From: Piromyces finnis finn
Lineage: Eukaryota; Fungi; Neocallimastigomycota
Assembly: GCA_002104945.1 (NCBI GenBank)
Contig: MCFH01000007.1
Span: 248,001-312,000, forward strand
DNA length: 64,000 nt
Direction: 5' to 3'
Shown: positions 15,952 through 29,236 of the stretch, in pieces
How the letters are laid out: each line of letters opens with the position of its first letter
Position numbering within the stretch: the stretch's first letter is position 1
Notes under the pieces: model-generated
The model's database searches: none
Told to the model about the DNA's origin: nothing
What the model saw: only the letters and a program-made list of their open reading frames with translations
Made by a program: the position numbers and the translations under genes

Positions 15952-17000
15952 TTTTTTTTTTTTTTTTTTTTTTTTTTTTTAACGGCATCAAATATTTAAA
16001 ACTTTATTATTAATTTAATTAAAATTATAATACATGTAATAAAAAAAATTAAAAATAAAAAATAAAAATAAAAAAAATATGTTTAAATAAACACAAATGA
16101 ATAAAAATTGGGTATAATGTATTCTAGTAATTTTAATTAAAATAAGAAAGCCACTATTATACTAAAGTATAATAATTGTATTTGACTTCCAATGGGACAC
16201 CGAGTCAAAGATCAAAATTTTATCATGGGACAAAATTATGATCTCCATTGGTTGCGCTGGCCCTCCTGGCCTGTCTTACTGTTTCTTCAACATTGACGCT
16301 CTTGGATGTTGCTTCAAACCTTTTGAACATTGACCATTGCTGGCCAATATCAAAAGGCATGATTTTGGTTAGAAGTTCCGCGGTTACCGTCAAGAATGGT
16401 GTTCCTTCATTAGTACCAGATTGAATCTGACACTTGCAAAGTTCTTTCCATTCCCTTGAATTGTAATTGATATTGTTAAAACTTCTTCCCCCAAAAAGGA
16501 ATTTAAATATTTTACTGCACACACTAGAATAATCATACATATTAATATTCACCGGATTATTAGAACTATTACTATTATTAACTAAATTACTATCTAAATT
16601 AGAATTATTATCTTCACTATTGCTATCATTACTAATATCATTACTAATATTATTATTTCTATTACTACTATTGTTATTATTACTATTGTTATCATTACTA
16701 TTGTTACTATTATTATTAATGTTATTACTATCTCTACTGATATTAACATTTTCATTATTATTGATAGGACTGTTGGAATTACGTTGACTGAAAAAATTTA
16801 GTAGCTGGACTATGGAATCATAATGTTTAATACGGATATCTCTAAATGTTGGACAATCTAATAACCAATGTTTAATACTTTGAACACCACACTTGCAACA
16901 TGGACAGTAGTTAGGACAAACTGGATCAACAAATTTAGCAGCTTTGATGTAATTGACAAGGTATGAGATAATACAATTTGAGTTTTTCCATTTGTTAAAA
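15952..17000 (-). mobile_element. 5'-truncated young LINE copy with poly(A) and a 264-bp internal deletion
   Basis: T-tract at 15952-15980. Nearly identical to 33548-34890; the C-terminal peptide differs only by FLFGG vs FLLGG. Lacks 33602-33865 of the full element. Confidence 0.92.
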
Positions 17001-19869
17001 TATTAAATTGTGTTATATTATTTTTCATTTTGAAATTTTTTTCCTTTAAAATTTTTTAATTTTATGGATAATGTATAAAAAACTATTAATTTTAATTCAT
17101 TTTAAATTAATAATATATGATTGTACGTTGAATATTAAATTTTTTATATAAAATACACCATAATCACACCATACATAGAATCTATCTCATAATTAATTTT
17201 GGGAACTATATAATATTTTAAATATTTTTATTTTATTTTTGATTTATTTTAATATTTTTTGATATAAATTATAATATTACAATTTATAATTTTTATATAA
17301 AATTATATTTATTATTTAAATTTATATTTAAATTTTAAATAATACCTTATAATTTTATAATTTTACTCTATAATAAATTAATTTTTTTATTTCTTTGTTT
17401 TTTTTATATAACTTATTAAATTATATATAATTTAATTGCTTAGTAAAGCTTGTAAGCTCTCTTTCTAAGAGCTTCAGTTTCTTCTTCATCAGCACTGTCT
17501 TCGTTGTCATCAGCATCAACTTCAGCATCAACTTCAACTTCTTCATCAGCACTGTCTTCATTGTCACCAGCATCAATATCAGCATCAACTTCATTTTCGG
17601 ATTCACATTCACCGTTAGCTAAAACAGAGGTACTAAGTGGTAAATCTCTAGCGTTAGAACCAGCGTAGATAGTGTATTTACCTTCTTCTGGCTTAACGTA
17701 TTCCATAGCATCAACATCAAAGTATGAAAGATCGTGGTTATCAATGAAGATGGTAACTTCTTGGCTTTCTCCTGGTTGTAACATAACCTTGTCGAATCCC
17801 TTGAAGACACGAGCTGGATGGTCCTTAACAACTTCTGGGAAGGAAAGGAAAATCATTGGAACTGCAGCACCAGCAACATCACCAGTGTTGGTGACTGTTA
17901 AAGTGACGTAGAGACCATCATCTTCCATATCTCCTTCTAAGTTTTCGTATTTGAAGTCGGTGTAGGATAAACCGTAACCGAATGGGAAGGTTGGTTCAAT
18001 ACCTTGCTTGTCGAACCAACGGTAACCAACGAAAAGACCTTCGTTATAGTCGTAGACAGTCATCTTTTCACCACCATCTGGGTATTCTGGTTCGTACTTA
18101 ACATCAGCTGGGTAATCTTCACGTGGAGCCCAAGTGTATGGTAAGTGACCAGATGGGTTGACATCTCCGAATAAAACATCAGCAATAGCATGTCCAGTTT
18201 CTTGACCTGGCATACCGGCAAAGACAACACCCTTAACCTTGTCTAAGAATGGAACATTGACTGGTCCTGGAGCGTGAATAACAACAATGGTGTTTTCATT
18301 AACTGAGGCAACAGCATCAATTAATTCGTTACCACCGTGCCATAAATCTAAGTTAAGACGATCACCAGCGTTACCTTCAACAGTAATGTATTCTTCACCA
18401 GAATCGGCTTGAACAAAGACAATGGCTAAATCAGCGTCCTTGGCAGCTTCAGCACCTCCTTCGGCATCATCTTCACCGTAACTAACTACTTCAATGTTGT
18501 CTTGCTTAGCTCTTTCAGTAAGAGCTGAAAGTGGATCAATAATGTACTTGAAATCAGTAGTACCTGAACCCCAACCAAGAGCAAGAGTACCATCGGAACA
18601 CTTCATATCTTCACAGAACTTGGTTGGCATGGAATCCTTACCAATAACGGCAATCTTGTTGACGCCCTTAATTGGAAGAATGGCTTCGGCGTTCTTTAAT
18701 AAAACGTTACTGTCAGCACCAACCTTTCTGTTGAGAGCAATGTTTTCTTCGGTAAGAGTATCAACGTATAAGTTGACGTCTGGGAAGTTTTCCATTTGAC
18801 CGGCCTTGTATAAGGTACGGATGATACGTAATGCGGCATCATCTAATCTTTCTTGTGGGAAAATTCCGGCATCAATGCATTCTTGAATGTGTTCACCCCA
18901 GAAACTGTCACCAATGTAATCTGGACCCCAGTACTTACCACCTGGCATGTTCATATCCATACCAGCCTTGAAACTCTTTTCAACATCGAAAATTGACCAC
19001 CAGTCGGAAACAACGGCTCCTTGGAATCCAAGCTTGCCCTTTAAGTACTTGGTTAAAAGTCTTTCGTTTTGGACGGAGTAGGTACCGTTAATGGCGTTAT
19101 AGGATGACATAACAGCGTTAGATTCACCGTCAATAACAGCACGGTAGAATGGTTCCATGTAGACTTCCCATAAGGCTTGTTCTGGAATGTTGGAGGTGGA
19201 GGATCCACGATTGTTTTCTTGGTCATTACCAATGAAGTGCTTGGAAGTAGCAACAACACCTTGTGATTGAATACCCTTAACTACTTCAAGACCACATTGT
19301 GCAACATAGAATGGATCTTCACCAAAACTTTCCCAAATTCTACCTGAGGCTGGTGCACGTTGAATACCCATAGCTGGACCAAGTGCAAAGTTAATACCTC
19401 TTTGGTAGAATTCGTTACCTTGGGCTTCACCAACCTTACGAAGTAAGGTTCTATCAAAGGTGGCAGCTGTGTTAATAGAGGCTTGCCATGAGGTGGCTGT
19501 ACCCTTACCAAATCTAACACCAGCTGGTCCATCTTGAAGGCAAATACCCTTGAATCCCTTTCTTTCAATTGGATCAATGGAACCAACACAAACACCTTGC
19601 ATGTTTTCTCTACCAGTGGTAAGTGTGATTTTTTCTTCATTAGTTAAATCAGCAACCCATTCTCTGGCTTTAGCGTCGGCTTCTTCCCAAGTCATAGCAA
19701 GGGTCTTAGAAGCGCAAAGAAGAGCAACAGTGGATAAAACAGTATTGAATTTCATTTTGATTTTTTTTTATTATTTCTATTTTATTTTTATAATTTATTA
19801 ATTTTATTTATTTGATTTTTTTATTGTTTTTTATTTTATTTATTTTATAAGATTTATTGATGTTTTTTA
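16571..19869. repeat. Left arm of large inverted repeat (pairs with 25941-29236)
   Basis: Coordinates of matching positions sum to 45810 through the GH3 gene and its flanks. The proteins and all shadow ORFs are identical in both arms. Confidence 0.95.
17440..19755 (-). CDS. Secreted GH3 beta-glucosidase (copy 2), 771 aa, intronless
   Basis: Same GH3 motifs as copy 1 (VSDW, SGEEYITVEG). Identical protein to 26055-28370. Confidence 0.95.
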   Translation of the reverse strand: MKFNTVLSTVALLCASKTLAMTWEEADAKAREWVADLTNEEKITLTTGRENMQGVCVGSIDPIERKGFKGICLQDGPAGVRFGKGTATSWQASINTAATFDRTLLRKVGEAQGNEFYQRGINFALGPAMGIQRAPASGRIWESFGEDPFYVAQCGLEVVKGIQSQGVVATSKHFIGNDQENNRGSSTSNIPEQALWEVYMEPFYRAVIDGESNAVMSSYNAINGTYSVQNERLLTKYLKGKLGFQGAVVSDWWSIFDVEKSFKAGMDMNMPGGKYWGPDYIGDSFWGEHIQECIDAGIFPQERLDDAALRIIRTLYKAGQMENFPDVNLYVDTLTEENIALNRKVGADSNVLLKNAEAILPIKGVNKIAVIGKDSMPTKFCEDMKCSDGTLALGWGSGTTDFKYIIDPLSALTERAKQDNIEVVSYGEDDAEGGAEAAKDADLAIVFVQADSGEEYITVEGNAGDRLNLDLWHGGNELIDAVASVNENTIVVIHAPGPVNVPFLDKVKGVVFAGMPGQETGHAIADVLFGDVNPSGHLPYTWAPREDYPADVKYEPEYPDGGEKMTVYDYNEGLFVGYRWFDKQGIEPTFPFGYGLSYTDFKYENLEGDMEDDGLYVTLTVTNTGDVAGAAVPMIFLSFPEVVKDHPARVFKGFDKVMLQPGESQEVTIFIDNHDLSYFDVDAMEYVKPEEGKYTIYAGSNARDLPLSTSVLANGECESENEVDADIDAGDNEDSADEEVEVDAEVDADDNEDSADEEETEALRKRAYKLY

Positions 19870-28370: not shown

Positions 28371-28809
28371 GCAATTAAATTATATATAATTTAATAAGTT
28401 ATATAAAAAAAACAAAGAAATAAAAAAATTAATTTATTATAGAGTAAAATTATAAAATTATAAGGTATTATTTAAAATTTAAATATAAATTTAAATAATA
28501 AATATAATTTTATATAAAAATTATAAATTGTAATATTATAATTTATATCAAAAAATATTAAAATAAATCAAAAATAAAATAAAAATATTTAAAATATTAT
28601 ATAGTTCCCAAAATTAATTATGAGATAGATTCTATGTATGGTGTGATTATGGTGTATTTTATATAAAAAATTTAATATTCAACGTACAATCATATATTAT
28701 TAATTTAAAATGAATTAAAATTAATAGTTTTTTATACATTATCCATAAAATTAAAAAATTTTAAAGGAAAAAAATTTCAAAATGAAAAATAATATAACAC
28801 AATTTAATA

Positions 28810-29236
28810 TTTTAACAAATGGAAAAACTCAAATTGTATTATCTCATACCTTGTCAATTACATCAAAGCTGCTAAATTTGTTGATCCAGTTTGTCCTAAC
28901 TACTGTCCATGTTGCAAGTGTGGTGTTCAAAGTATTAAACATTGGTTATTAGATTGTCCAACATTTAGAGATATCCGTATTAAACATTATGATTCCATAG
29001 TCCAGCTACTAAATTTTTTCAGTCAACGTAATTCCAACAGTCCTATCAATAATAATGAAAATGTTAATATCAGTAGAGATAGTAATAACATTAATAGTAA
29101 TAGTAACAATAGTAATGATAACAATAGTAATAACAATAGTAGTAATAGAAATAATAATATTAGTAATGATATTAGTAATGATAGCAATAGTGAAGATAAT
29201 AATTCTAATTTAGATAGTAATTTAGTTAATAATAGT
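28810..29236 (+). mobile_element. LINE fragment lacking its 3' end, carried inside the right arm
   Basis: Mirror of 16571-17000, including the same 264-bp deletion junction (caattacat/caaagctg). No 3' UTR or poly(A). Confidence 0.9.

Follow-up and report, generated by a model that had tools for sequence, protein, structure and literature searches.

A GH3 beta-glucosidase palindrome in Piromyces finnis, probably extended by one-ended copying out of older inverted promoter homology

The window, a 64,000-nucleotide stretch of the Piromyces finnis genome (contig C200:248001-312000; assembly of 56.46 Mb in 232 contigs), holds two near-identical inverted arms, each with a gene of the beta-glucosidase family GH3. 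The arms surround a spacer of 6071 bp, which is unique save for embedded retroelement pieces. The locus is probably a two-layer inverted duplication, a reading that we hold with moderate rather than high confidence. According to it, the last event was one-ended copying from left to right, with its start in old promoter homology and its outer end non-homologous. The history of the locus was read from one assembly. Coordinates of the features are collected in Table 1.

The arms (16571-19869 and 29236-25941) aligned in inverted orientation with 99.88% identity over 3299 columns, with one mismatch and one gap in blastn. A column-by-column alignment placed the differences at a 3-bp indel (16674-16676) and a T/C substitution (16713) and revealed nothing else. 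Both fall within a zone of tandem repeats with a period of 15-24 bp, as detected with Tandem Repeats Finder (TRF), and this tract is the fastest-mutating part of the arms. The segment 16714-19869 was 100% identical between the arms, with 0 differences in 3156 bp. The arm contents are 436 bp of a long interspersed nuclear element (LINE), 433 bp of intergenic DNA with 10% GC, a coding sequence (CDS) of 2316 bp and 114 bp upstream of the ATG. An earlier interpretation of the bare letters, here called the sequence-only reading, had described near-identical arms that include about 430 bp of AT-rich non-coding DNA and an identity that ends abruptly about 114 bp upstream of each ATG. Both descriptions agree with these alignments.

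Each arm carries an intact gene for a predicted secreted GH3 beta-glucosidase without dockerin. The two genes are transcribed divergently, facing away from each other, and contain no introns. The Pfam domains PF00933 (GH3 N, 4.7e-41), PF01915 (GH3 C, 1.8e-55) and PF14310 (Fn3-like, 1.4e-15) were detected, and solved beta-glucosidases (PDB 3zyz, 4i8d and others) gave full-length matches of about 1e-141. An SDW motif is located at residues 250-252, and the protein ends in an acidic repeat tail. It is already on record as 'beta-glucosidase [Piromyces finnis]'.

The divergence step at the inner arm ends (19869/25941) was sharp. Perfect identity over 3156 bp gave way to about 16% divergence with indels. 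The inner boundary adjoins significant older inverted homology of 165-195 bp, in which the block 19870-19990 was 80.6% identical to 25901-25775 over 129 bp in blastn. Once past a right-specific insert of 39 bp, the two sides were back in register: 20 identical bases come first, then a divergent segment interrupted by indels, then about 37 identical bases. No template for this insert was found in the window or the genome, and it may represent older heterology. The local alignment score of the inner homology was 49, compared with 14.3 +/- 2.0 (maximum 24) for 500 dinucleotide shuffles and 13.5 +/- 2.1 (maximum 22) for a null built from 352 real AT-rich 200-bp pieces of the window. It thus lies about 17 standard deviations above the AT-rich nulls. 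An exact 20-mer and an exact 25-mer of the inner block were present in the whole 56-Mb genome only at both arm sites and in the upstream region of a GH3 paralog on contig C164. Shuffles, real AT-rich nulls and genome-wide word counts together ruled out chance or AT-richness as the source of the similarity. The sequence-only reading had noted interrupted homology across an indel of about 39 bp and had named AT-rich shuffled controls as its check. The homology passed this check with a clear distance to both null maxima.

The 20-mer TTTTTGTTATTTGATATAAC, which holds a GTTAT/ATAAC inverted pair, is located at 19870-19889 and 25882-25901. The 25-mer TTATAAATATATATTTATATTTATA is located at 19949-19973 and 25792-25816. 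Both words recur upstream of the C164 GH3 gene, within G000:C164:351329-351435. The three youngest GH3 copies share these words in their upstream regions and the rest of the genome lacks them, which makes them candidate cis-regulatory or core-promoter elements.

The inner homology bears on a simpler explanation, in which 3.3 kb were recently duplicated in inverted orientation in a single event and inserted 6 kb away where no older paralog existed, with the inner similarity due to chance or generic AT-rich sequence. Zero arm divergence and the clean outer breakpoint would fit such an event, and the 39-bp insert at the inner junction could be filler. However, the inner homology stands far above the AT-rich nulls and is in register straight after the insert, and in 56 Mb its 20-mer and 25-mer occur at no sites other than these GH3 promoters. 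This explanation is very unlikely overall, and in its pure form it is refuted. A variant with a pre-existing promoter relic on the right, without a whole gene, survives within the two-layer explanation.

The outer arm ends are located in transposon sequence. The outer 436 bp of the left arm (16571-17006) and the corresponding 28804-29236 on the right belong to a dispersed LINE family, with matches of 92-97% identity to at least 40 copies. This non-LTR (long terminal repeat) retrotransposon has an RVT_1 open reading frame (ORF; copy at 32676-34625), poly(A) ends and a 5' truncation that differs by copy. The fragment in the arms represents the C-terminal part of ORF2 and was 95.6-96.8% identical to its family. 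Both arms have the same 5' junction of the LINE and the same private 265-bp deletion, which argues that the arm ancestor held the LINE insertion and that the arm identity postdates it. On the left, the LINE runs for 620 bp outside the arm to its poly(A), 96-97% identical to the family. The left LINE is thus intact to its poly(A), whereas the right one is cut off, which indicates that information flowed from left to right. Beyond the outer arm ends (16570/29237), local alignment reached a score of 9 against a null mean of 8.5 and no homology was significant. The lack of homology past 29236 indicates a non-homologous outer end of the last event. An extension of the right LINE to 29279, proposed by BLAST, was discarded after local alignment showed that it was not above background. 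The outer junction lies in low-complexity sequence of the LINE, about 45 bp outside the tandem repeats detected with TRF. The LINE differs by 3-4% from its relatives, compared with at least 16% divergence in the old promoter block. Assuming comparable neutral rates, it would be younger than the old inverted duplication and would have arrived after it.

Retroposition was considered as well. In this scenario, the LINE machinery would have reverse-transcribed a GH3-LINE read-through transcript from the left copy, and the product would have inserted on the right. Gene and LINE fragment are co-oriented, the gene is intronless, and the inner boundary 114 bp 5' of the ATG is a possible transcription start. 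However, target-primed reverse transcription keeps the 3' end, and the right arm lacks the last 620 bp of the LINE as well as the poly(A); the candidate was rejected for this missing end. No target-site duplication was found flanking the right arm, and the insertion would have had to hit, by coincidence, the exact spot next to an older homologous promoter block. Such an origin is extremely improbable.

Five related GH3 genes were present in the genome: the two arm copies, the C164 copy, copy 1 (5867-8134) and a copy on contig C150. The C164 gene showed 91-93.5% nucleotide identity to the arms with a synonymous divergence (dS) of 0.29, uniform along the gene, and the C150 copy a dS of 0.74. The ratio of nonsynonymous to synonymous divergence (dN/dS) between arms and C164 was 0.04, which points to strong selection on the GH3 protein. 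The C164 paralog was used as third sequence (outgroup) in the comparison of the left and right sides. Its homology to the left side extended from 17400 across the arm boundary as far as 20333 and resumed at 20458-20515 and at 20753-21238. This homology past the boundary indicates that at least 1.4 kb of the upstream context of the left gene is ancestral. On the right side beyond the boundary, about 165-195 bp were common with the left side or C164, followed by no homology.

The relationships among the three sequences changed at the boundary. In the proximal 114 bp, left and right were 100% identical, and the identity of each to C164 was 85%. Across the 124 aligned columns that follow past the boundary, identity was 83.9% between left and right, 86.5% between left and C164 and 79.1% between right and C164, so that the three appear about equally diverged there. 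The informative sites at which left agreed with C164, left with right and right with C164 numbered 0, 15 and 0 inside the arms and 11, 7 and 2 outside. Such discordance across the boundary is a prediction of a recent overwrite of an older homolog.

Copy 1 provided a second view of exchange within the family. Its CDS nucleotides 1-366 were 96-100% identical to the arms, with runs of 120, 119 and 88 identical nucleotides and a dS of 0.076. Nucleotides 1423-1650 were nearly identical as well (dS 0.098). Because dS is about 0.65 elsewhere in the gene, interlocus conversion has demonstrably been active in this GH3 family, and copy 1 reads as a conversion mosaic. In both tracts, copy 1 was nearer to the arms than the C164 paralog, which is otherwise much closer to them.

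The sequence-only reading had proposed an old inverted duplication whose arms were re-homogenised by arm-to-arm gene conversion, as in Y-chromosome palindromes. Its two layers are retained here, with older homology under recent identity, a sharp step between them, a switch in the site pattern and the mosaic structure of copy 1. Its symmetrical conversion is not retained, since the outer boundary lies in the younger LINE, which continues for 620 bp on the left and has no homologous counterpart beyond the boundary on the right. As a rival for the last event, recurrent two-ended conversion between long-standing arms, of the kind seen in primate Y palindromes, is favoured by the sharp inner step from perfect identity to older homology and by the conversion mosaics elsewhere in the GH3 cluster. 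It has to place its outer boundary inside a LINE that is younger than the old homology, with no homology on the right beyond it. A two-ended tract cannot end in the LINE unless the right side already had a matching LINE, and no trace of one was present. Recurrent two-ended conversion is disfavoured for the last event and we consider it unlikely.

An artefact of assembly or polishing was also considered, either one copy duplicated in silico or two more divergent copies homogenised by consensus calling. This suspicion is invited by 3.1 kb of perfect identity in an assembly built from long reads and rich in repeats. However, each arm is anchored in different unique sequence at both sides, the arms are shorter than typical long reads, and the 6-kb unique spacer is incompatible with the spacer-less fold-back artefacts that chimeric reads produce. 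A redundant contig with the palindrome locus was not found in the genome, where the only other match was the 91% paralog with different flanks. The residual differences are an indel of a 3-bp repeat unit and a substitution, not homopolymer errors, as expected for real and very young repeats. An artefact is accordingly quite unlikely.

The preferred two-layer history would have proceeded as follows. In the first and older layer, an inverted duplicate of a GH3 gene, or at least of its promoter, would have arisen about 6 kb away. The only trace left of this layer would be the promoter homology of 165-195 bp inside each arm, which is roughly as diverged as the C164 paralog. Downstream of the left gene, at a distance of about 430 bp, a LINE would later have inserted. 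The second layer, which is very recent, may have started with a break or a stalled fork in the older right copy. One end would have invaded the left copy within promoter or gene homology, at the edge of the 39-bp heterology. Synthesis would then have proceeded outward across the gene and the 3' intergenic DNA and have entered the LINE by 436 bp, so that 3.3 kb were copied from left to right. Finally, the extended end would have joined the right flank without homology, through end joining or a microhomology template switch in the low-complexity tail of the LINE. The inner limit would be set by the 39-bp heterology, which either stopped heteroduplex extension or represents junction filler. Overall, the event would be a one-ended, synthesis-dependent conversion or break-induced replication (BIR), and it would have enlarged the arms rather than merely refreshed them. 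The identity and the polarity of the second layer can be read from the sequence itself; from these we infer the mechanism.

Several points weigh against this history. The right side of the first layer survives as a promoter block only, and a complete older gene may never have stood there. The 39-bp insert may be a heterology of older date or filler from the junction, and the right arm could in principle have been longer after the event and have lost its outer part by deletion. The counts in the distal block (11 sites shared by left and C164, 7 by left and right) do not fix a topology on their own. The old block contains perfectly conserved islands, so that its similarity may partly reflect constraint and its age is uncertain. 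The whole history rests on a single assembly.

Table 1. Features of the palindrome locus and its surroundings. Positions refer to the window.
Feature	Position	Strand	Remarks
Left arm, putative source copy	16571..19869	-	LINE fragment, AT-rich 3' intergenic DNA, GH3 gene, 114 bp 5' of ATG
Right arm, putative derived copy	25941..29236	+	Reverse complement of left arm, 99.88%
GH3 beta-glucosidase gene, left copy	17440..19755	-	771 aa, single ORF, signal-like N-terminal leader, no dockerin
GH3 beta-glucosidase gene, right copy	26055..28370	+	Protein identical to left copy
Older homology block, left	19870..20047	-	Belongs to an upstream stretch (at least 1.4 kb, to 21238) common to C164 paralog
Older homology block, right	25731..25901	+	Best 124 columns about 84% to left, 79% to C164; homology lost deeper in spacer
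Right-specific 39-bp insert	25902..25940	+	Exactly at inner identity boundary; not in left copy or C164; unique in genome
5'-truncated LINE insertion, left	15950..17006	-	Poly(A) as T-run 15953-15981; private 265-bp deletion at 16946/16947; only 16571-17006 in arm
LINE fragment, right	28804..29236	+	Same 5' junction and same 265-bp deletion; cut off at 29236
Spacer	19870..25940	.	6071 bp, 17% GC, no ORF >64 aa
GH3 copy 1, older paralog	5867..8134	-	77% aa identity; near-arm-identical tracts at CDS nt 1-366 and 1423-1650
Retroelement debris, right flank	29399..35005	+	Near full-length LINE 29567-34890 (RVT_1 ORF) nested in older copy 29399-29566 and 34889-35005

The window has about 20% GC overall, with genes of 40% GC amid intergenic DNA of 10-12% GC. 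Its neighbouring genes are eukaryotic and encode an ankyrin-SH3 protein, a chitin synthase and a kinesin-associated protein. Mid-spacer, an (ATA)61 microsatellite at 21747-21930 showed 98% matches and is self-complementary. The spacer also contains a very young retroelement tail on the forward strand (23552-24115, poly(A) at 24090-24116), which has at least 40 genomic copies at 99%, and an old, inverted fragment of the same family at about 22854-23003. Further copies of this tail type were located directly downstream of the C164 GH3 gene (G000:C164:347924-348456) and, between the ankyrin gene and copy 1, at 10087-10600. These GH3 loci generally lie amid retroelement debris. Since the spacer is gene-free, its inversion would move no gene and would be of little consequence.

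In the right flank, the nested LINE at 29567-34890 is flanked by a target-site duplication of 12-13 bp, ACGTAGTTCTAAT, whose target word occurs in the LINE's own ORF2 tail. The possibility that this near full-length LINE had split the right-arm LINE, with the rest located past 34890, was ruled out. The segment 34889-35005 continues the older 89% fragment 29399-29566 and has its own target-site duplication. Past 29236, the right side continues with unrelated retroelement debris.

An older LINE copy (86-89%) is located at 3580-5428, downstream of GH3 copy 1. Its orientation is the same as in the arms and its distance to the stop codon is similar, with a different 5' end. One LINE insertion ancestral to both copy 1 and the arms is unlikely, as the 5' ends lie at LINE positions 2537 and 2216 and family identities are 86-89% and 96%, respectively. 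The copy at 3580-5428 probably inserted independently, a hint of a favoured landing zone downstream of these GH3 genes.

Synteny in relatives was sought in one metagenome scan, which returned only transcript-sized contigs (2-4 kb, without flanks) or distant bacterial GH3 loci. The 5' ends of the transcript-sized contigs were not alignable to the promoter of the arm GH3 genes. No relevant publication on palindromes or gene conversion in Neocallimastigomycota was found in the literature searched. The locus is a clear, datable small example in a phylum for which no published description was found.

The locus provides a base-pair-level record of the doubling of a gene for a predicted secreted beta-glucosidase in an anaerobic gut fungus. 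The embedded transposon fragment gives the direction and the relative date of the event, and interlocus conversion was found to be active in the same GH3 family. The arm genes are indistinguishable by short reads or peptides, which calls for caution in annotation and expression work. Perfect inverted repeats of 3.3 kb may make the locus structurally unstable, and this homology could support additional conversion or allow the gene-free spacer to invert. A more general habit is conceivable but doubtful. In P. finnis, and perhaps in anaerobic gut fungi generally, genes for carbohydrate-active enzymes (CAZymes) might be amplified as head-to-head palindromes, made or refreshed by one-ended, homology-primed copying that stops in LINE debris. 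If so, the LINE-rich and extremely AT-rich intergenic DNA would systematically shape enzyme dosage. No description of CAZyme amplification as LINE-ended palindromes was found for the phylum in the literature searched.

The encoded enzyme has the three-domain layout (GH3 N, GH3 C, Fn3-like) of fungal GH3 proteins such as Trichoderma reesei Cel3A (PDB 3zyz, 4i8d), to which it matched over its full length at about 1e-141. In contrast to the Cel3A type, it comes from an anaerobic-fungus lineage and has an acidic repeat tail. It differs from cellulosomal GH3 proteins in the same genome (P0048 with PF02013) by the absence of a CBM10 dockerin.

The mechanism is of a known kind and no new one is proposed, as conversion-homogenised palindromes and inverted-homology-primed duplications are both well known. 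Like the gene palindromes of primate sex chromosomes, the locus has inverted arms with more than 99.9% identity along most of their length, a unique spacer, an intact gene per arm and an identity that is younger than the duplication. However, its arms are 3.3 kb long, compared with tens of kb to Mb in primates. Its last event appears directional, with a non-homologous outer end inside a LINE and extended arms. The host is an asexual-looking haploid fungus, and the locus is known from one genome. Ectopic conversion among clustered paralogs, in fungi and other eukaryotes, similarly leaves short identical tracts in diverged paralogs, as between copy 1 and the arms, and phylogenetic discordance along the gene. 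The palindrome tract is far longer (3.3 kb), takes in non-coding DNA and part of a transposon, and has homology at one end only.

The one-ended event would be formally equivalent to a class of human structural variants, for which Carvalho, Lupski and colleagues reportedly described template-switch duplications mediated by inverted repeats, of the type duplication-triplication/inverted duplication (DUP-TRP/INV-DUP), with a model of BIR and microhomology-mediated BIR (MMBIR). In both cases, one junction lies in a pre-existing short pair of inverted homologous sequences and the other junction, in low-complexity DNA, has no homology or microhomology only. The product is an inverted extra copy. The P. 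finnis locus differs in having no triplication and a 39-bp junction insert without identifiable template, and its event was deduced from a single evolved genome rather than from a parent-offspring comparison.

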